Shown piece after piece: positions 1-33,149 of a DNA stretch of 64,000 nucleotides. The first letter of the stretch is position 1. Each line of letters begins with the position of its first letter. The notes under the pieces were generated by a model. The model was not told the origin of the DNA. It worked only from the letters and a program-made list of their open reading frames with translations, and made no database searches. Location of the stretch: IMG/VR virus record IMGVR_UViG_3300045971_000577, positions 124,001 to 188,000 of that record; one strand, given 5' to 3'. Made by a program: the position numbers and the translations under genes.

Positions 1-321
1 ACGGTGATTTAGAAAAAATCGTAAATCTCTCGATGGATCAAGATACACCACTGTGGTTTTCCAGTGCTGATTTATCAACAATGGATTATTACGAGATTCG
101 TAGATTAGTGTTTGTTCAATCTCGAATGCAGTCTTTGGGTTATTAAATTCGGCAAGGATCCTGTATGTGTAATCGGCGAAATTTTTACTAACTTCTTCCG
201 AGCTAGTAAAATAGTGTGTACCGAAATCTAAATTAGCAGGAAAGTAATTAGCTTCTCTATAACCTATATAGAATTTCTTCGTTACTTTGTGCTCACACCG
301 ATACACATAAGCTCTTGTCAT
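1..321 (-). CDS. GIY-YIG-like homing endonuclease, runs off the window edge
   Basis: Manual translation MTRAYVYRCEHKVTKKFYIGYRE...HYFTSSEEV...EIEQTLI...LLIN; same family as 37825..38433; open to position 1. Confidence 0.6.
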   Translation of the reverse strand, partial: MTRAYVYRCEHKVTKKFYIGYREANYFPANLDFGTHYFTSSEEVSKNFADYTYRILAEFNNPKTAFEIEQTLIYESRNNPLLINQHWKTTVVYLDPSRDLRFFLNHR

Positions 322-335
322 ATTACCTGTTTTTA

Positions 336-923
336 TTATCCGTTAAGGACCCAACCGAAGATTTCTTTCCACGGTTGCTCAACACTTACTTTCGGGAATA
401 GATCCGTTTCGTAATGTGTGTTGTATGGGTGATTGATAAGAATAGGCCGTAGACCTGCTTCATATCCTGCCTCTGCTTGACGCATGTGATCCTCAATCCA
501 GAAATAATTTGTATCAGCCCAACGCAGTAGTTCATGCGCCTTGCTAATGCCCGTTTCTAGACAGACAATCTCGTTAAAAATATCCCCGAAGATTGCCTTC
601 AGGTTTTTAGTCCGATTGATCTTAGCATCCGGATGACTACTGATACTTGTAACAATAGTAAATCTGAATCCTAAATCAACAATCTTCTGAACATATTCCA
701 CAGAGTCTGCAAAAGGTTCCAAATCTGCCACTAGCGGACCTTCATTGAATTCTTTTACAAACTGGTGTGCAAGTGTTGACGGAATATTATGTCGGGTATG
801 AATAGTATAATCACTATCTGTACCAGGAATACGCGGGAAGCCTTTGCTATCCATGAACTTTTCGAAACCTTTGTTCCAGTTTAACAGACAACCGTCTGCA
901 TCTGATAGGATTACTTTGTTCAT
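336..923 (-). CDS. HAD-superfamily phosphatase / 5'(3')-nucleotidase-like (T4 30.2-like)
   Basis: N-terminal DxDG motif (LSDADGCL) and WIED motif IV. Confidence 0.75.
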   Translation of the reverse strand: MNKVILSDADGCLLNWNKGFEKFMDSKGFPRIPGTDSDYTIHTRHNIPSTLAHQFVKEFNEGPLVADLEPFADSVEYVQKIVDLGFRFTIVTSISSHPDAKINRTKNLKAIFGDIFNEIVCLETGISKAHELLRWADTNYFWIEDHMRQAEAGYEAGLRPILINHPYNTHYETDLFPKVSVEQPWKEIFGWVLNG

Positions 924-2720: not shown

Positions 2721-3077
2721 TCAATATTGCGGTGCTCGTTCGTTCGCTGCCGAAAATACTGAGAAAATAGCTGTCTCTGGATCTGTGTCGGAAACTAGCA
2801 TCACACTCTGCGGCCATTCTACGCCCCACAGTTGGGTGTCTGTTCCGTTGTCTTCCTTAACCTTGAGCATTCGAGTCCAACGGCCATTCTCGATAAGAAT
2901 CCACTGCCCGGGTACAATATCGGTAATGTCTTCTCCGACAGAATAAACCTTTCCCCAACGAGGGCGAATACCTTCGCTCTTGCCGTTATCATTAGGGATG
3001 ATAATGCCGTTAACAATGCGCGAACCTCTTTCGAGATCCGTAACCAAAACCTTACCCTTTAGTGCTTTGATACTCAC
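2721..3077 (-). CDS. groES: GroES-like co-chaperonin
   Basis: IKALKGKVLV...GIIIP...GKVYSVG...IVPGQWIL cpn10 pattern. Confidence 0.75.
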   Translation of the reverse strand: MSIKALKGKVLVTDLERGSRIVNGIIIPNDNGKSEGIRPRWGKVYSVGEDITDIVPGQWILIENGRWTRMLKVKEDNGTDTQLWGVEWPQSVMLVSDTDPETAIFSVFSAANERAPQY

Positions 3078-3418
3078 TTAACTTCCTTCACGATAATGTC
3101 ACCAGATGGCAACTCTGTTTCTACTTGTGTCGACTTCGGTACAGGAGGATTTGTCTTGATGACTTTCGGTGTAGGAGTCATATTCATTCCTACAGCACTA
3201 GGTACAGGTCCCTTCAAACCAGTCGCAACAACTGCTTGCTGAACGCGATGATTTTCACGAGCAATTTGTTCGGCAGTCTTTGCAATTTCGCCACCGTTGA
3301 CAAGTTGATCACCGCGAGCGTTTACCTTCATGTTTCCAATTGCAGGTGATTTTTCGTTTTCACGGCGAATAGAATCCATGTCTATTGTTACACCGCGATA
3401 TGTTACATGTTTAGCCAT
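3074..3418 (-). CDS. hypothetical protein
   Basis: ORF coupled to neighbours; GNMKVNARGD motif. Confidence 0.6.
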   Translation of the reverse strand: MAKHVTYRGVTIDMDSIRRENEKSPAIGNMKVNARGDQLVNGGEIAKTAEQIARENHRVQQAVVATGLKGPVPSAVGMNMTPTPKVIKTNPPVPKSTQVETELPSGDIIVKEVK

Positions 3419-3960
3419 TATGCTATTTCCTTTAGATAATCTTTAATGTCGAGTCCGTACTTAATGGAATCGACTTTGTGAACCCCGATAAGATATAGTA
3501 TATACGAGGATACACTTGATCCTCTACCTACACCCCATATAAATTTATTCTTTCTCATGTAATCGATCAAGAATATAAACACACGCAGAAGCATAATCAA
3601 CTCACGCTCTTCGTACATTTTGTATTCTTGATGCACGCGATCAATCTCTTGCTGTACCTTGCATTTATCGAGCAGCCACGCAAGCACGTCTATTTGCTGA
3701 TAGATTACTGGAAAAATCCATTGATCAGCACACTTTTCGTGAAACTCATCGAATGATAATATTTCTTCGGGCGCACCCTCGAAAGTTATTACTTCGGACA
3801 GGAGTTCTGATTGGTGTTCTTGATGTAGTCTTATCTCGTCGTCAAAAATTACATTCAAGTGGCTGATGTTTTTGCCTTGCAATAACAATTCTCGCAGGCT
3901 ATCACTATTTAGTATTGCCTGGCCGTATGTGTTTATTGTTAGATTTTCTTCGGCTTCCAT
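3418..3960 (-). CDS. DNA polymerase III alpha (DnaE)-like N-terminal palm fragment
   Basis: WGVGRGSSVSSYILYLIGVHKVDSIKYGL matches DnaE GPGRGSAAGSLVAY.LGIT.IDP...L; only 180 aa. Confidence 0.8.
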   Translation of the reverse strand: MEAEENLTINTYGQAILNSDSLRELLLQGKNISHLNVIFDDEIRLHQEHQSELLSEVITFEGAPEEILSFDEFHEKCADQWIFPVIYQQIDVLAWLLDKCKVQQEIDRVHQEYKMYEERELIMLLRVFIFLIDYMRKNKFIWGVGRGSSVSSYILYLIGVHKVDSIKYGLDIKDYLKEIA

Positions 3961-28763: not shown

Positions 28764-29057
28764 TTATGATATATTATCCATATTGAATCGTACCACCTTG
28801 TCAAAGGACCAACCATATGGTAATAGTTCCTTATCTACCCGTTCTCTTAGTTCGGATATCGATATAGCCGAGTTCCACGGCTTAGGGGCCGAAGGATTTG
28901 CAGATTCATGTTCGCGCAATAGTTCGTCGTACACGCGAGCATGTATATCTTCGGCTTCCTCCCTTGTCAGCCCTTGTAACTTTTTGAAAGTAGCTTCTTC
29001 AGTCACGATAAAACACACTTCTCGACTTCGGAGTTTCCCACCAATCAATATGGTCAA
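28764..29057 (-). CDS. hypothetical protein
   Basis: ORF with TEEATFKKLQG; start uncertain. Confidence 0.45.
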   Translation of the reverse strand: MTILIGGKLRSREVCFIVTEEATFKKLQGLTREEAEDIHARVYDELLREHESANPSAPKPWNSAISISELRERVDKELLPYGWSFDKVVRFNMDNIS

Positions 29058-29550
29058 CCTTTACGTTTAGTTCACGCATCTTTACGTCAACCAATTCTGC
29101 CATCCATTCACTAAGCTTCTCACTTGTAGGAACAAATGTAACGATAAGAAATCCATCGTAGTATTCATACTCCGGGCTATCTGGCTGAAGATCGTCTAGA
29201 TCTAGCTTGTATCCAGCTACAAAATTTGTATCAGGCACATAGACAGGAATACGGGCTCGCGAATAACCTACCATTTGATCGTATAATGGATCGCCTATGT
29301 CAAGGATAAACTGGTGATCAATATTTTCATTGATCCACTTCTTTAGCCACTCTAGGTGCCTAAAGTCAGTTACCATGCTTGTATTATCAAGTTTATCACC
29401 TGTTAGATACACTTGCATCTTACCTTCATGACCGTGTAGATGTCTGCAAGCACATTTCAGGTCAGCAGCGAACTTTCCGTTCAGCTTCTGTGTCCATACT
29501 CTGTGTCCATAGCAGAATTCAAATGTCTTATCGATTACCCATTTGCTCAT
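28999..29550 (-). CDS. queD: 6-carboxy-tetrahydropterin synthase (QueD / PTPS)
   Basis: FCYGHR, CRHLHGH, DF, DH, PTSE, ETP. Confidence 0.9.
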   Translation of the reverse strand: MSKWVIDKTFEFCYGHRVWTQKLNGKFAADLKCACRHLHGHEGKMQVYLTGDKLDNTSMVTDFRHLEWLKKWINENIDHQFILDIGDPLYDQMVGYSRARIPVYVPDTNFVAGYKLDLDDLQPDSPEYEYYDGFLIVTFVPTSEKLSEWMAELVDVKMRELNVKVDHIDWWETPKSRSVFYRD

Positions 29551-29705
29551 ACAAGCTCCTCGATAATACCGACCACTTCTGCAATGATAAGGAATGCACC
29601 GCAGAATGTAAATGCACCAAGCACAAGGCCTGTACCTGCAAGAATTCGCAATGCGCTCTTTACCAGGCTAATTCGAAGATGTAGTTTAGGATCAGGATGC
29701 TTCAT
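29547..29705 (-). CDS. small membrane protein (not in ORF track)
   Basis: MKHPDPKLHLRISLVKSALRILAG...IIAEVVGIIEELV between folE and queD. Confidence 0.55.
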   Translation of the reverse strand: MKHPDPKLHLRISLVKSALRILAGTGLVLGAFTFCGAFLIIAEVVGIIEELV

Positions 29706-29706
29706 A

Positions 29707-30390
29707 TTATTCCTTACCTACAGAAACAAGTCTCATGAATTCTGTTCTAACATTTGGATCAGACTTGAATACTCCACCGAGCTTACTTGTTACGGTGCTC
29801 GAACCTGTATCTTCAACACCACGACTCTTTACGCAGAAGTGTTGTGCAGTGATTACAACACCAATATTATCTGTTTCCAGAATGTATTGCAGTGCATGGT
29901 ACACTTGTTCGGTAAGTCTTTCTTGGATTTGTGGACGCTTGCTGAAATATTCCACGATACGATTGATCTTAGATAGACCAAGTACCTTTTGATTAGGAAT
30001 ATATGCAACTGTTGCAAGTCCGTCGATAATGACAAAGTGATGTTCGCAATTGGATTGTACGTTGACATTTCGTTCAACTACCATCTCGTCGTACTTCATT
30101 TTGTTATCTACCGCTGTGCATTTTGGAAATGCATCGTAGTCCAATCCCCAGAAGATTTCATTCACGTACATCTTAGCAACACGCTTTGGTGTTTCGATCA
30201 AACTGTCATCAGTTAGATCCAATCCCATAATGTGCATGATATCTGTGAAGTGCTTTTCGATCTCGGTAATCTGATCTTTACGATCTAGAAGTTTACCTTC
30301 ACGTACTGGAGTTTCTACTCCCATCTTTACTAGGTGGGCGTGAACTTGTTGACCCAATTCGGGGTCGCATTTTGTTTTATTGTATGACAT
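29707..30390 (-). CDS. folE: GTP cyclohydrolase I
   Basis: ETPKRVAKMY, CEHHF, GLSKINR, PQIQERLT, HFCV..RG. Confidence 0.96.
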   Translation of the reverse strand: MSYNKTKCDPELGQQVHAHLVKMGVETPVREGKLLDRKDQITEIEKHFTDIMHIMGLDLTDDSLIETPKRVAKMYVNEIFWGLDYDAFPKCTAVDNKMKYDEMVVERNVNVQSNCEHHFVIIDGLATVAYIPNQKVLGLSKINRIVEYFSKRPQIQERLTEQVYHALQYILETDNIGVVITAQHFCVKSRGVEDTGSSTVTSKLGGVFKSDPNVRTEFMRLVSVGKE

Positions 30391-30459
30391 GATAACCTTC
30401 CTTTGTGATGGTTTTGTTTTGATAGTTTGTAACCGTTGTGTTACAAAAGTATTTATCTG

Positions 30460-30786
30460 TTAGTAGATGTTGTGCTTTTGTTTTAGGTTATTAAACTCTT
30501 GGTTATATGTTGGCGAGAATAATTCCTTATTTAGGATTCTAACCAAATCCTGGAAGTCGTTTTTCAACACAAGTGTATCACTTCTGAGATTCATTAGTTC
30601 TACTGCCTGAAACTCGCTGGTCCTAATCAATCCCTTCAATATTCCGGGATTGGCCATATTGCCGCGTAGTTTTGATGCAACGCATTCCTGCTCAGTCAGC
30701 TCTTTTAGTTGTTCTACACTCAACGAACCGAAGAGTGTATCCAGAAGATCAATCTTCAGGAGTTGGTCATTTGTAAGTGTAATCAT
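30460..30786 (-). CDS. hypothetical protein
   Basis: ORF coupled to thyA. Confidence 0.55.
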   Translation of the reverse strand: MITLTNDQLLKIDLLDTLFGSLSVEQLKELTEQECVASKLRGNMANPGILKGLIRTSEFQAVELMNLRSDTLVLKNDFQDLVRILNKELFSPTYNQEFNNLKQKHNIY

Positions 30787-32258
30787 ACGGCCATCGGTGG
30801 TTTGTTGGTTACATCGGGATATGGGTCATATCCGATAAGCTCAATGTCTTCCCACTGCAAAGATAGTATATCTTCGAATGTAGGTAGTTCCTTCTTGATG
30901 TTTAGTGTAGGCAACTTACGTGGAGTGCGCTCCAACATCTGCTGTACCATATCCATTTGGTTCTGATAGATGTGTACGTCCCATCCCATGTATACCAAAT
31001 CGCCCGGCTCCATACCCAAGTGCTTCGCAAAGATATGATTCAGTAGGGCATAAGACGCGATGTTGAACGGTAAGCCATAAGGCACGTCGTTACTACGCAT
31101 TACGAAACAGGTGTTTAGTTTGCCCTTATTTAGGGTAAAATCGCCCTCTACACTGTGCATATGCATCATGTGGCAGGGCGGCAGTGCCATCTCATGTAAT
31201 TGTCCAGGATTCCATCCCGTTACCACGTGCCTGCGTCCGTACGGATCTTTCTTGATACCGTCAATCAGTTCTTTGATTTGATCTACCCCTAAATGCTCAG
31301 TAGTCTTTTCTGGAATAAAAATAGATGAATATAACAGTTGAGTTTTTAGATCAACCCACTGGCACGTTTTTTCACTATAATATCCTTTGCCGGCAATATC
31401 TTTATCTAATGAATATTTCTTCCAATTAGTTATTTTTTTATCCCATCCCGGCAATGTCTGTGCATCGATAACGAAGTTAGAAAATAATAACCATCGAGCA
31501 GACACATATATATTTTTTCTACCGTAGTTAGGATATGAATGATCTTTTTCATCATAACATCTCGATATCATTGCATCCCACATTGGGCGAAGTTTTTTCC
31601 ATAGTTCCGGGTACGCAGACTTTACGGTTATATCACCGGAACATGCTACACCTGCCACATTGGGGAAATATGGATCGTATATCTCACCTTTATCGATATT
31701 CTGCTTACGAACATTTGCTACATACCCGGTCTTATGAAACTTTACATCAAAAAATAACTTATTTCCATTACCCCTGATTTCTTTTGTTACGGTATATTGT
31801 CCACAAGAGTTTGATGTGAACTCTTTCCCGACATATCCATGAACATCTGAAGAAGTATCTATTATGATATCTTTTGTAAATGGTGTATCAATACCCGGAG
31901 GTATTTTTGCAAAACCATCAAAGTTTCTCCATTGATGCGAATAACCATATCCTAAACTTCCAGAAGGCAAATGGTTTAGGCTGCGCTTGTCCAGGAACTC
32001 ACGCGAGGTGTTTCCCTTCCAGATGTTGATGTTTTTAGCTTCTAAGAGCTTGGTCTGTGTTTCTCCACGTAGGAAAAACATAGTCTCTTCGAAAGCAATA
32101 CGCAAAGGTGTTTTGCGTGTAGTTTGGATGGGAAAGCCTTGCGCTAAATCCCAGCGTAGAAGTCTGCCAAATACAGCTCGAGAGCCAACACCTGTTCGGT
32201 CTGGTTTATCGACGCCATTTTCGACGACATCCTTTAAAAGTTCAATATAGTTTTGCAT
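30783..32258 (-). CDS. thyA: thymidylate synthase with an in-frame HNH-like insertion
   Basis: DRTGVG, GFP..TTRK, QWRNF, GVDQI, ALPPCH, RSND..GLPFN, HIY; ~208-aa insert. Confidence 0.92.
   Translation of the reverse strand: MQNYIELLKDVVENGVDKPDRTGVGSRAVFGRLLRWDLAQGFPIQTTRKTPLRIAFEETMFFLRGETQTKLLEAKNINIWKGNTSREFLDKRSLNHLPSGSLGYGYSHQWRNFDGFAKIPPGIDTPFTKDIIIDTSSDVHGYVGKEFTSNSCGQYTVTKEIRGNGNKLFFDVKFHKTGYVANVRKQNIDKGEIYDPYFPNVAGVACSGDITVKSAYPELWKKLRPMWDAMISRCYDEKDHSYPNYGRKNIYVSARWLLFSNFVIDAQTLPGWDKKITNWKKYSLDKDIAGKGYYSEKTCQWVDLKTQLLYSSIFIPEKTTEHLGVDQIKELIDGIKKDPYGRRHVVTGWNPGQLHEMALPPCHMMHMHSVEGDFTLNKGKLNTCFVMRSNDVPYGLPFNIASYALLNHIFAKHLGMEPGDLVYMGWDVHIYQNQMDMVQQMLERTPRKLPTLNIKKELPTFEDILSLQWEDIELIGYDPYPDVTNKPPMAV
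31290..31913 (-). mobile_element. HNH-type endonuclease domain inserted in thyA
   Basis: WDAMISRCY...YPNYG...RWLLFSNF...LDKD...YSEKTCQWV; more AT-rich than the flanks. Confidence 0.65.
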
Positions 32259-32308
32259 TACTCTTCGTCTCCCGCAATGCCGTATGATACGACATTAGGG
32301 CACGAAAG

Positions 32309-32572
32309 TCAAAGAGTATCAGCTAACTTCCTGACTATATATTCTTCTTCAGTAATATTGCCCATACAATCCTGATGATATGCTGCCATAAGCGTACTAT
32401 CCTGCGAATTTGCAGCATTATATGTATGCCCCCAATTTACATAATGGATATAATATGGCTTCCACCAAATCTTTACGTCATTTTCACACTTAACCGGAAT
32501 CCACGCGAACTTCTTCTCGTATTCACATTCGAATATAAGACCGGGATCATTTCTCCATGTCTTTTTTAACAT
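32309..32572 (-). CDS. hypothetical protein
   Basis: KKFAWIPV...IWWKPY; ends EEEYIVRKL. Confidence 0.55.
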   Translation of the reverse strand: MLKKTWRNDPGLIFECEYEKKFAWIPVKCENDVKIWWKPYYIHYVNWGHTYNAANSQDSTLMAAYHQDCMGNITEEEYIVRKLADTL

Positions 32573-32577
32573 TAGCT

Positions 32578-32597
32578 AAAACGGGGTCGAAACCCCG
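32578..32597 (-). terminator. intrinsic terminator
   Basis: CGGGG-TTTCGA-CCCCG-TTTT. Confidence 0.65.
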
Positions 32598-32603
32598 CCC
32601 AAG

Positions 32604-33149
32604 TTACTCCGTTTTTAGTGGAGGCAGTTTATAGAAATCGTGGTTTCCCACTTTCATCGTCTTCTTCAGTGTATTCCGCCAGGCTGGCTGACTCGTGAAG
32701 GGATTATGGAAGTGTGTTGCACCTAAAGTATTGTCTTCGACGTTTCCACCGAGTGCAGTAATAGCAACTATCGTCGCTACCTGGAACTGGTCAACCACCT
32801 GCTGGTTGATAGAACCGTCTCTATTTGTTACAGGTATTTCTTTACCCCGTCTATTGTTTTCACAGTACCACGAAAAGGCACATACAACATTCTTAGTGAT
32901 ACGGGAAATAGCTGTCTGTTGGACAACCCCGCACACTGTTTTCGGGAATCGCGGATCATTGGCGCGATTTAGGGTAACAGAAGCAACTGCAAACTGTCCT
33001 CTGATATCTTCATTTCGTGCTTCATAATAGATATTCTGTGCAAGGCAATAAACCTGCTCGGGATCTATAATGGTTGTATCTACTGGTAAACCAGCAATAC
33101 TAGCAGTCTGGAGAAGATATGCAAGCAAGATTTTTGCTGTTATCATCAT
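32604..33149 (-). CDS. cell wall hydrolase (SleB / Hydrolase_2)
   Basis: CLAQNIYYEARNE, VTLNR, FPKTVCGVV, FSW, GATHFH, GNHDFY. Confidence 0.9.
   Translation of the reverse strand: MMITAKILLAYLLQTASIAGLPVDTTIIDPEQVYCLAQNIYYEARNEDIRGQFAVASVTLNRANDPRFPKTVCGVVQQTAISRITKNVVCAFSWYCENNRRGKEIPVTNRDGSINQQVVDQFQVATIVAITALGGNVEDNTLGATHFHNPFTSQPAWRNTLKKTMKVGNHDFYKLPPLKTE

Follow-up and report, generated by a model that had tools for sequence, protein, structure and literature searches.

The window analysed here is a stretch of 64,000 nucleotides (positions 124,001 to 188,000 of IMG/VR record IMGVR_UViG_3300045971_000577) from the genome of a jumbo phage. It carries on its minus strand an ORF for a thymidylate synthase, ThyA, that is interrupted in frame by a long additional segment in one surface loop (Table 1). 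The two ThyA parts match Pfam PF00303 in two stretches (E 7.9e-81), thymidylate synthases from the PDB align to residues 3-118 and 323-483, and the roughly 204 residues between them replace an 8-residue loop of C. hominis TS. The catalytic and substrate-binding residues C362, R342/R343, R388/S389/D391, N399, H429 and Y431, as well as R21, E58, W80 and W110, are invariant in the alignment A2, and an AF2 model of the full-length protein keeps the TS fold (TM 0.92, normalised to E. coli TS). The insert modelled alone is predicted with high confidence to fold as an independent two-part domain (pLDDT 93.5, pTM 0.87).

Table 1. Features of the interrupted thyA gene (positions are those of the window; residues are those of the ORF product)
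Positions	Strand	Residues	Feature
30783..32258	-	1-491	thyA ORF, 491 aa plus stop; the only ThyA in the 369-kb phage genome, which has no ThyX
31914..32258	-	1-115	ThyA N-terminal part, ending in the QWR folate-site motif
31905..31964	-	99-118	Cassette-linked flank, SGSLGYGYSHQWRNFDGFAK; nearly constant in all insert-bearing alleles of this type but only 35-50% identical to the nearest empty alleles (EGDMGKGYGYQWRHWE); likely a co-conversion tract and candidate recognition or immunity site; a close relative in sequencing run X3 stops matching near 31974
31290..31913	-	116-323 (F116-L323)	In-frame insert, 208 codons; the family domain proper is residues 119-322
31677..31853	-	136-194	Insert sub-domain 1, predicted small SH3/Tudor/CarD-like beta-barrel (DSSP strands in model m5c83edfb55b3; weak fold matches, Z up to 5.5)
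31314..31634	-	209-315	Insert sub-domain 2, predicted helix carrying W..M..RCY, a Y..YG.K..V..W..F..F..D element, then a beta-beta-alpha unit
31398..31406	-	D285-K286-D287	DKD motif at the end of the first strand of the predicted beta-beta-alpha unit, each residue at least 90% conserved in the family; candidate active site
31338..31340	-	Q307	In the helix of the predicted beta-beta-alpha unit; this column is Asn or Gln throughout the family
30786..31289	-	324-491	ThyA C-terminal part, with DQ, RR, the nucleophile Cys, RS.D, N399, H429 and Y431 all intact
31173..31175	-	Cys362	Nucleophile

The initial annotation described about 208 extra codons in the ThyA loop, AT-rich, with HNH-type motifs, without a stop codon and without intron or intein features, and our analysis confirms this observation. 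The motifs are real and are the conserved columns of a large family (W, RCY, Y..YG, DKD and Y....C.W in the family alignment A3). The GC content of the insert is 35.5% against 45.2% for the ThyA parts, and its GC3 is 27.9% against 48.1%. The insert is not an assembly artefact or chimera, since contig depth is uniform across it in two source-like sequencing runs, with no joint, and the same architecture occurs in many independent assemblies and in cultured phages. The match to its family is far beyond chance, with an E value of 7e-38 to phrog_2081 and 4941 homologues at E<=1e-3 among 50%-identity cluster representatives. Of the 149 nearest 50%-identity clusters, 73 are ThyA proteins with this domain in the same loop. 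A megablast search of the gene against GenBank phages gave no near relative.

No signature of splicing was found. There is no Hint or intein Pfam match at E<=1 in the protein or in residues 110-330, no Cys or Ser at the N-junction and no His-Asn followed by Cys, Ser or Thr at the C-junction, the junctions reading ...NFDG/FAKIPP... and ...TTEHL/GVDQ.... No RF00028, RF00029 or other Rfam intron model matches at E<=10 on either strand of 30300..32700. In contrast, the related protein P0150 has the same insert plus a Pfam-recognisable LAGLIDADG intein at another ThyA site, which shows that a true intein in this protein family is readily detected. An intervening intron need not be in frame with the downstream exon, but here the frame is open through both junctions in the 73 diverged clusters and in three cultured lineages, although junction sequences and lengths vary among lineages. 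The insert is under strong purifying selection over both of its halves (dN/dS 0.02-0.09). It remains conceivable that the insert is removed from the RNA or the protein by a mechanism that current models do not recognise, or that the fusion is cut by a protease, but we consider this very unlikely. Nothing positive supports it beyond the lower model confidence of the linkers at both junctions, selection acts on the whole insert as protein, and proteolytic excision would leave ThyA in two chains. Retention of the insert in the mature enzyme is nevertheless inferred, as there are no RNA or protein data for this or any related phage; no RNA run holds this phage, and the one run labelled RNA looks like DNA and covers only conserved pieces. 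A separate internal translation start for the insert was also considered, but no in-frame ATG, GTG or TTG lies near the point where free-standing relatives begin.

The selection data likewise bear on the possibility that the insert is an inert remnant, that is, a decaying former endonuclease gene tolerated in a permissive loop and neither mobile nor functional. Shortened derivatives do exist: the relative P0096 keeps only about 105-120 extra residues and has lost the barrel and the DKD motif, and the form in the window is itself shorter than the 270-aa forms found in other ThyA proteins. However, the dN/dS values are the reverse of decay, insert exchange is recent and the fold prediction is confident, so this reading is disfavoured and appears very unlikely.

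The relationship of the insert to HNH endonucleases is less certain. Five PHROG families are hit, four labelled HNH endonuclease and one restriction endonuclease, and relatives in AFDB are automatically named AP2 or HNH. The nearest non-ThyA relatives are free-standing genes of 170-340 aa in classic intergenic positions of homing endonuclease genes (HEGs), next to nrdB, ligase or polymerase genes, for example between nrdB and thioredoxin, and these carry I-HmuI NUMOD-like or AP2 tails. On the other hand, none of 67 family members matches any HNH, HNH_3, AP2 or NUMOD Pfam model at E<=10, NCBIfam gave no match to the insert or its relatives, and a profile of the family against PDB sequences gave nothing at E<=10. 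Foldseek against the PDB gave nothing significant, and VIA-align, both in a wide search and as a second look, gave only weak barrel matches, including the Hpy99I N-terminal barrel (Z 4.4), and a match of the C-terminal half to PacI, the best nuclease fold match, at Z 4.5, which is within noise. DSSP of the insert model shows, in the numbering of the insert, a strand at 164-167, a strand at 182-185 and a helix at 186-193, with D167 and an N/Q column. The position at the end of strand 1 where HNH enzymes have the general-base His is Lys in at least 90% of family members and Arg in distant ones, and no conserved His exists anywhere in the domain. The HNH fold is therefore neither confirmed nor excluded. 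The form in the window, of 204 aa, also lacks the C-terminal NUMOD-like DNA-binding tail that is present in the free-standing relatives and in the ThyA inserts of 270-280 aa. The initial annotation further proposed that the last HNH Asn is absent, so that the nuclease may be inactive. This argument does not hold, because that column alternates between Asn and Gln across the family, and the Gln form is under strong purifying selection and shows signs of recent transfer.

The insert behaves as a mobile element. Among 121 alleles, the 17 that bear the insert are scattered through the ThyA tree and need 13 gains or losses, with at least 7 label changes for the insert-free group forced by well-supported branches. 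The inserts are younger than their host genes: between the alleles L045 and L048 the insert has 92.6% nucleotide identity against 76.8% and 71.2% in the flanks, with the shared tract running from about residue 91 to 315. Sister alleles are 87-100% identical except at residues 99-118, the short tract next to the insert, where identity is 35-50%, which looks like co-conversion. A relative in run X3 is 93-97% identical in thyA but stops matching exactly at the cassette edges. Cultured phages show the same pattern. In B. subtilis phages, 015DV002 has a 270-aa insert while 015DV004, 000TH008 and 000TH009 are empty; identity is 96% overall, but 45 codons downstream of the insert are only 60-67% identical before identity returns to 100%. 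Klebsiella phage KP13-7 and E. coli phage UE-S1 share the insert and its flanks at 88-98% identity while the gene ends are 69-76% identical, and RaK2, of the same genus as KP13-7, is empty. Co-conversion patterns show recombination, but they do not show which nuclease, if any, started it.

Taken together, the interpretation given in the initial annotation, of a homing-type element kept as a permanent in-frame domain of a ThyA surface loop without splicing, is partly supported: comparative evidence supports its core, while the HNH identity and the argument for inactivity are not supported. We consider it more likely than not that a site-specific mobile cassette, derived from a free-standing phage homing-endonuclease-like gene, sits in the variable loop of thyA between the QWR and DQ motifs, is translated as part of ThyA and leaves the synthase core intact, with the insert folding beside it. 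In this view the cassette spreads between thyA alleles of related phages by gene conversion, presumably during co-infection, and carries with it a short stretch of its own version of the flanking thyA sequence. The most likely trigger would be cleavage of the empty allele near the loop-coding region by the insert domain itself, acting as a ThyA fusion. As TS is an obligate dimer, two copies would be held together, and the changed flank would protect the carrier allele from being cut. Being in frame would give the element the expression signals of thyA and would tie the integrity of its reading frame to selection on thyA. Our data establish the anatomy, the intact ThyA, the lack of splicing signatures, purifying selection on the insert, horizontal movement with co-conversion and recurrence in three phage lineages, whereas translation without any removal, nuclease activity including site-specific cleavage of the empty allele, and the target site are inferred.

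An alternative is that the insert is a domesticated or non-catalytic module for binding DNA or protein, derived from an endonuclease family but without nuclease activity, and kept because it benefits the phage, for example by tethering dTMP synthesis to DNA or to a complex. It may then spread by ordinary homologous recombination and selection, or be mobilised in trans by another nuclease, as T4 MobE does for the defunct I-TevIII (PMC2790892). The lack of a catalytic His, of an HNH model match and of a clear solved nuclease fold, the missing NUMOD-like tail, and purifying selection as strong as on ThyA itself are consistent with this. However, the D-K-D and N/Q columns are conserved equally in free-standing and ThyA-embedded members, and the free-standing members consist of little else besides a DNA-binding tail and sit in typical HEG positions. 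The well-supported state changes and the inserts younger than their hosts fit a selfish drive better than a slowly selected trait. In addition, the phage has only this one copy of the domain, and no nuclease gene lies next to thyA in the window. We regard domestication as the main rival, but unlikely.

More tentatively, and with less than even likelihood, there may be a third, splice-free way for homing endonucleases to colonise conserved genes besides introns and inteins, in which the element becomes a permanent, independently folding domain in a permissive loop of the host enzyme. The active nuclease would then be the ThyA chimera itself, with a non-canonical beta-beta-alpha centre built on Asp-Lys-Asp instead of Asp-His, and the obligate TS dimer may supply the two catalytic units needed for a double-strand break. 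Textbook accounts hold that HEGs survive inside essential genes because an intron or intein removes them from the product. The case described here suggests a common alternative that annotation has hidden under the plain label "thymidylate synthase". If the fusion is an active nuclease, it defines a new accommodation strategy for selfish DNA and a nuclease family with no curated model and an unusual active site, and it gives a natural example of large-domain insertion that leaves an enzyme functional. It also marks a recombination hot spot that shapes phage nucleotide-metabolism modules, and phages 015DV002 and 015DV004 offer a tractable filled and empty pair.

We found no description of this arrangement in the searchable literature, where searches for an in-frame endonuclease in thymidylate synthase returned only ThyX inteins, td introns and free-standing genes. 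Inteins carrying LAGLIDADG or HNH homing-endonuclease domains, including phage thymidylate-synthase inteins (10.1101/2025.01.02.630785), are also in-frame insertions in conserved nucleotide-metabolism genes, sporadically distributed and moved by gene conversion, but the ThyA insert has no Hint domain or intein junction residues, should stay in the protein, and lies in a variable surface loop rather than in a conserved active-site motif. Group I introns with endonuclease ORFs in td/thyA, such as T4 td with I-TevI and those of I-BmoI and Bacillus phage beta22 (the last cited in PMC4528723), share the host gene, the phage setting and homing with co-conversion of flanking exon sequence; here, there is no detectable ribozyme core, the reading frame is open into both flanks in all lineages, and the insertion site differs from that in T4. 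Free-standing phage HEGs such as the T4 Seg and Mob genes (PMC2790892, PMC2330249) and nuclease genes at exchange boundaries (PMC10448857) are genes of the same kind as the nearest non-ThyA relatives of the insert, and recombination tracts end at the element, but the insert has no start, stop, promoter or RBS of its own and lies inside a coding sequence. With HNH (beta-beta-alpha-Me) homing endonucleases such as I-HmuI the insert shares the PHROG label, a predicted beta-beta-alpha unit with an acidic residue at the end of strand 1 and an Asn or Gln in the helix, and NUMOD-like tails in relatives, while Lys or Arg replaces the general-base His and there is no HMM or clear fold match. The closest precedent for an endonuclease ORF lodged directly in a protein-coding gene with neither intron nor intein is fungal mitochondrial rps3 fused in frame to LAGLIDADG endonuclease coding sequences (Gibb and Hausner 2005, as cited in PMC7902536). 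That case involves a different nuclease family and a different kingdom. The rps3 insertions lie near the end of the gene, whereas the ThyA insertion is internal, in a loop of an enzyme whose two halves must still fold together. The same ThyA loop tolerates a sizeable natural insertion in Lactobacillus casei thymidylate synthase, whose small domain comprises about 50 extra residues (90-139). That segment is a short lineage-specific elaboration and not a mobile, independently folding domain with free-standing relatives, and in our alignments L. casei chains align only from residue 144 onward to the region after the insert.

The phage genome to which the window belongs is 369 kb long, has direct terminal repeats and was assembled from a pond metagenome. 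The thyA ORF (see the table below) is matched by the thymidylate synthase model of Pfam in two pieces (E 8e-81), and solved thymidylate synthases align to residues 3-118 and 323-483 of its product. The roughly 204 residues between the two aligned parts stand where C. hominis TS has eight. The observation made in the initial annotation, that a thymidylate synthase carries a long in-frame insert, is therefore confirmed. All catalytic and binding residues of ThyA are present and are invariant among relatives, namely the PCH cysteine C362, the R342/R343 pair, R388/S389/D391, N399, H429 and Y431. The genome has no second ThyA and no ThyX. In an AlphaFold model of the whole protein the synthase fold is kept, with a TM of 0.92 when normalised to E. 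coli TS. The loop that holds the insert is the one that holds the 50-residue "small domain" of L. casei TS, and this fits the way in which L. casei chains align only from residue 144 onward.

Coordinates of the features discussed in the text
Sequence	Position	Strand	Feature
Window	30783..32258	minus	thyA ORF, 491 codons
Window	31290..31913	minus	Limits of the insert in the initial annotation, F116-L323
Insert	residues about 18-76		Predicted first lobe, small beta-barrel
Insert	residues about 91-197		Predicted second lobe, alpha/beta
Window	about 31974 and 31283/31284		Points at which a relative in sequencing run X3 stops matching
Window	28999-30390 and 32604-33149		Neighbours of thyA: QueD-like gene and GTP cyclohydrolase I gene on one side, SleB-type cell-wall hydrolase on the other
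Window	30329-30457		Jump in contig depth in sequencing run X1, between folE and the 108-codon ORF
P0150 (871-aa metagenomic ThyA)	residues 141-303		Splice-free insert
P0150	residues about 405-744		LAGLIDADG intein
L024 (IMG/VR contig)	3001-3846		Empty thyA allele with carrier-type flanks
L052 (Bacillus phage 015DV004)	1980-2726		gp144, free-standing relative of the insert family
L046 and L045 (syntenic relatives)	L046:5910-6596 and L045:5473-6225		Variable space just downstream of thyA

When modelled alone with 67 relatives, the insert gives a confident compact structure (pLDDT 93.5, pTM 0.87) with two lobes. The first weakly resembles SH3, Tudor and CarD-type barrels, including the N-terminal barrel of the restriction enzyme Hpy99I. 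The best solved match of the second is the HNH restriction enzyme PacI at Z 4.5, a value within noise. By sequence, the insert matches five PHROG families, four of which are labelled HNH endonuclease and one restriction endonuclease, the best being phrog_2081 at E 7e-38. In contrast, no Pfam or NCBIfam model matches it, none of the 67 relatives hits an HNH, AP2 or NUMOD model, and a profile of the family finds no solved structure. The conserved columns are W, RCY, Y..YG, W, F..F..D, then D-K-D, Y, C.W and an Asn/Gln, and there is no conserved histidine. In the model, D-K-D ends the first strand of a strand-loop-strand-helix unit and the Asn/Gln lies in the helix, a predicted layout that is that of a beta-beta-alpha-metal finger with lysine in place of the general-base histidine. 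The family is therefore related to proteins called HNH, but it fails the defining tests that we could run, and we treat "HNH" as a label and not as a finding. The suggestion in the initial annotation that the nuclease may be inactive, since the last HNH Asn seemed to be absent (KTQLLY), is unfounded, because that column alternates between Asn and Gln across the family.

We found no splicing machinery. There is no Hint or intein match, the junction residues are wrong for an intein, and no intron covariance model matches at E<=10. One relative, P0150, carries the same insert and also a LAGLIDADG intein at another ThyA site, so that two kinds of mobile element occupy one gene. This intein is easily detected by Pfam, indicating that an intein in the window's gene would have been seen had there been one. 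Hidden splicing is unlikely.

An exhaustive HMMER search with the insert found 4941 relatives among 50%-identity cluster representatives. Of the best 149, 73 are ThyA proteins with the domain at the same loop, at ThyA model position about 117-122, while the rest are mostly stand-alone proteins of 170-340 residues made of this domain plus a short tail. In cultured phages these stand-alone genes lie where free-standing homing endonuclease genes usually lie, for example between nrdB and thioredoxin and beside a DNA ligase, and their tails match the I-HmuI NUMOD-like or AP2 DNA-binding modules. One such gene, with a NUMOD-like tail and located between nrdB and thioredoxin, is found in Bacillus phage 015DV004, whose thyA site is empty. 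Proteins of 400-660 residues (P0132, P0138, P0144, P0159, P0193, P0217, P0218 and others from this search) hold the domain internally, several of them matching in 2-5 stretches, and have no ThyA and no Pfam hit. These may be multi-barrel endonucleases, or the domain may be embedded in other unknown hosts. ThyA proteins of about 550 residues with a NUMOD-like piece form large viral clusters in the ESM Atlas, and GenBank records of Bacillus phages 015DV002 and Kioshi and of Klebsiella phage KP13-7 annotate such genes simply as thymidylate synthase.

In a codon alignment of eight orthologous genes from independent assemblies, the insert has a dN/dS of 0.02-0.09 in both halves among the closer sequences, which is like that of the ThyA parts where their dS is not saturated. 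Inert decay is an unlikely explanation. The insert is AT-rich, with a GC3 of 0.28 against 0.48 in the window's gene, and only one copy of the domain exists in this genome.

Four lines of evidence agree that the insert is mobile. Firstly, on a tree built from ThyA columns outside the insert and its flanks, the 17 insert-bearing alleles are scattered among 104 empty ones. Thirteen gains or losses are needed, and well-supported branches force at least 7 label changes for the insert-free group and 5 for the 13 mid-length carriers. Secondly, inserts are often more alike than the genes that hold them. The genes of L045 and L048, two of the syntenic relatives, share 92.6% of insert nucleotides but 76.8% and 71.2% of the flanks, and the similar tract runs from about residue 91 to 315, while the window's insert is 82-83% identical to three others whose flanks are 67-81% identical. 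Thirdly, each carrier and its nearest empty sister are 87-100% identical along ThyA except at residues 99-118, where identity falls to 35-50%. All carriers of this type share SGSLGYGYSHQWRNFDGFAK there, while empty alleles have EGDMGKGYGYQWRHWE. Finally, in run X3 a relative is 93-97% identical to the window's thyA on both sides but stops matching at about 31974 and at 31283/31284, where its next codons read like an empty allele (VGEV before DQI), and nothing covers the insert. The contigs of that run are short, and this last observation is therefore suggestive only.

The same pattern is seen independently in cultured phages. B. subtilis phage 015DV002 has a 270-residue insert, while its sisters 015DV004, 000TH008 and 000TH009 are 96% identical and empty. 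The first 127 codons are identical, the 45 codons after the insert are only 60-67% identical, and the rest returns to 97-100%, which is a textbook co-conversion tract. Among the enterobacterial jumbo phages, KP13-7 (Klebsiella) and UE-S1 (E. coli, another genus) share the insert and its flanks at 88-98%, while the gene ends are 69-76% identical. RaK2, which is in KP13-7's own genus, is empty, and it is 84-98% identical to KP13-7 over most of the gene's ends but 43-69% identical around the site. A different interruption, perhaps an intron, may lie in the same gene in Bacillus phages KKP_4047, KKP_4048, KKP_4050 and vB_BspH_TimeGriffin, in which thyA is annotated as two CDS and the match spans about 1183 nt in 2-3 pieces instead of 885.

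The anatomy and the population pattern, both of which are shown by our analysis, are those of a homing element that is accommodated by being in frame in a permissive loop rather than by being spliced out; that the insert stays in the mature enzyme, and that it has nuclease activity, are inferred. We think that the domain itself is the nuclease, since the stand-alone relatives consist of it plus a DNA-binding tail, the DKD and N/Q columns are kept in both the stand-alone and the embedded settings, and no other copy or neighbouring nuclease gene is present. The unusual chemistry is a real caveat to this step, and the main alternative is a non-catalytic domain that is moved about by recombination or by a trans-acting nuclease. 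The interpretation in the initial annotation, a homing endonuclease tolerated as a permanent domain of a surface loop or a domesticated DNA-binding domain, is supported in part. The co-converted tract lies mainly upstream in the window's type and downstream in the Bacillus type, and these different sides suggest different cut sites in the two sub-families. Degenerate derivatives and possible footprints hint at the usual cycle of gain, decay and loss, with the decay seeming to proceed by in-frame deletions. P0096, a ThyA of 393 aa, has a shortened insert of about 105-120 residues that has lost the barrel and the DKD motif, and looks like in-frame decay of the element. The allele of L024 is empty but has the carrier-type flanks (GYSHAWRNFGG ... 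GVDQI), and is either a footprint left by precise loss of the insert or the allele lineage in which the cassette first settled.

Full-text literature searches, including searches built around thymidylate synthase or in-frame endonuclease insertions, found nothing describing this arrangement and returned ThyX inteins, td introns and free-standing genes. The nearest precedent is the in-frame fusion of LAGLIDADG endonuclease sequences to fungal mitochondrial rps3 (PMC7902536). The arrangement is of high interest because it is widespread, has been overlooked and can be tested directly with existing B. subtilis phages.

The neighbours of thyA in the window include 7-deazaguanine precursor genes (the QueD-like and GTP cyclohydrolase I genes). 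The identity of the neighbours is judged by synteny with the relatives L044-L049, where the called genes carry PF01242, PF01227 and PF07486. Close to thyA, contig depth in run X1 jumps from 43 to 108 and several contigs end or diverge, which may reflect a repeat or a strain-variable junction. In the syntenic relatives the space just downstream of thyA is variable, and one has a free-standing GIY-YIG gene before folE while another has a methyltransferase gene directly after thyA.
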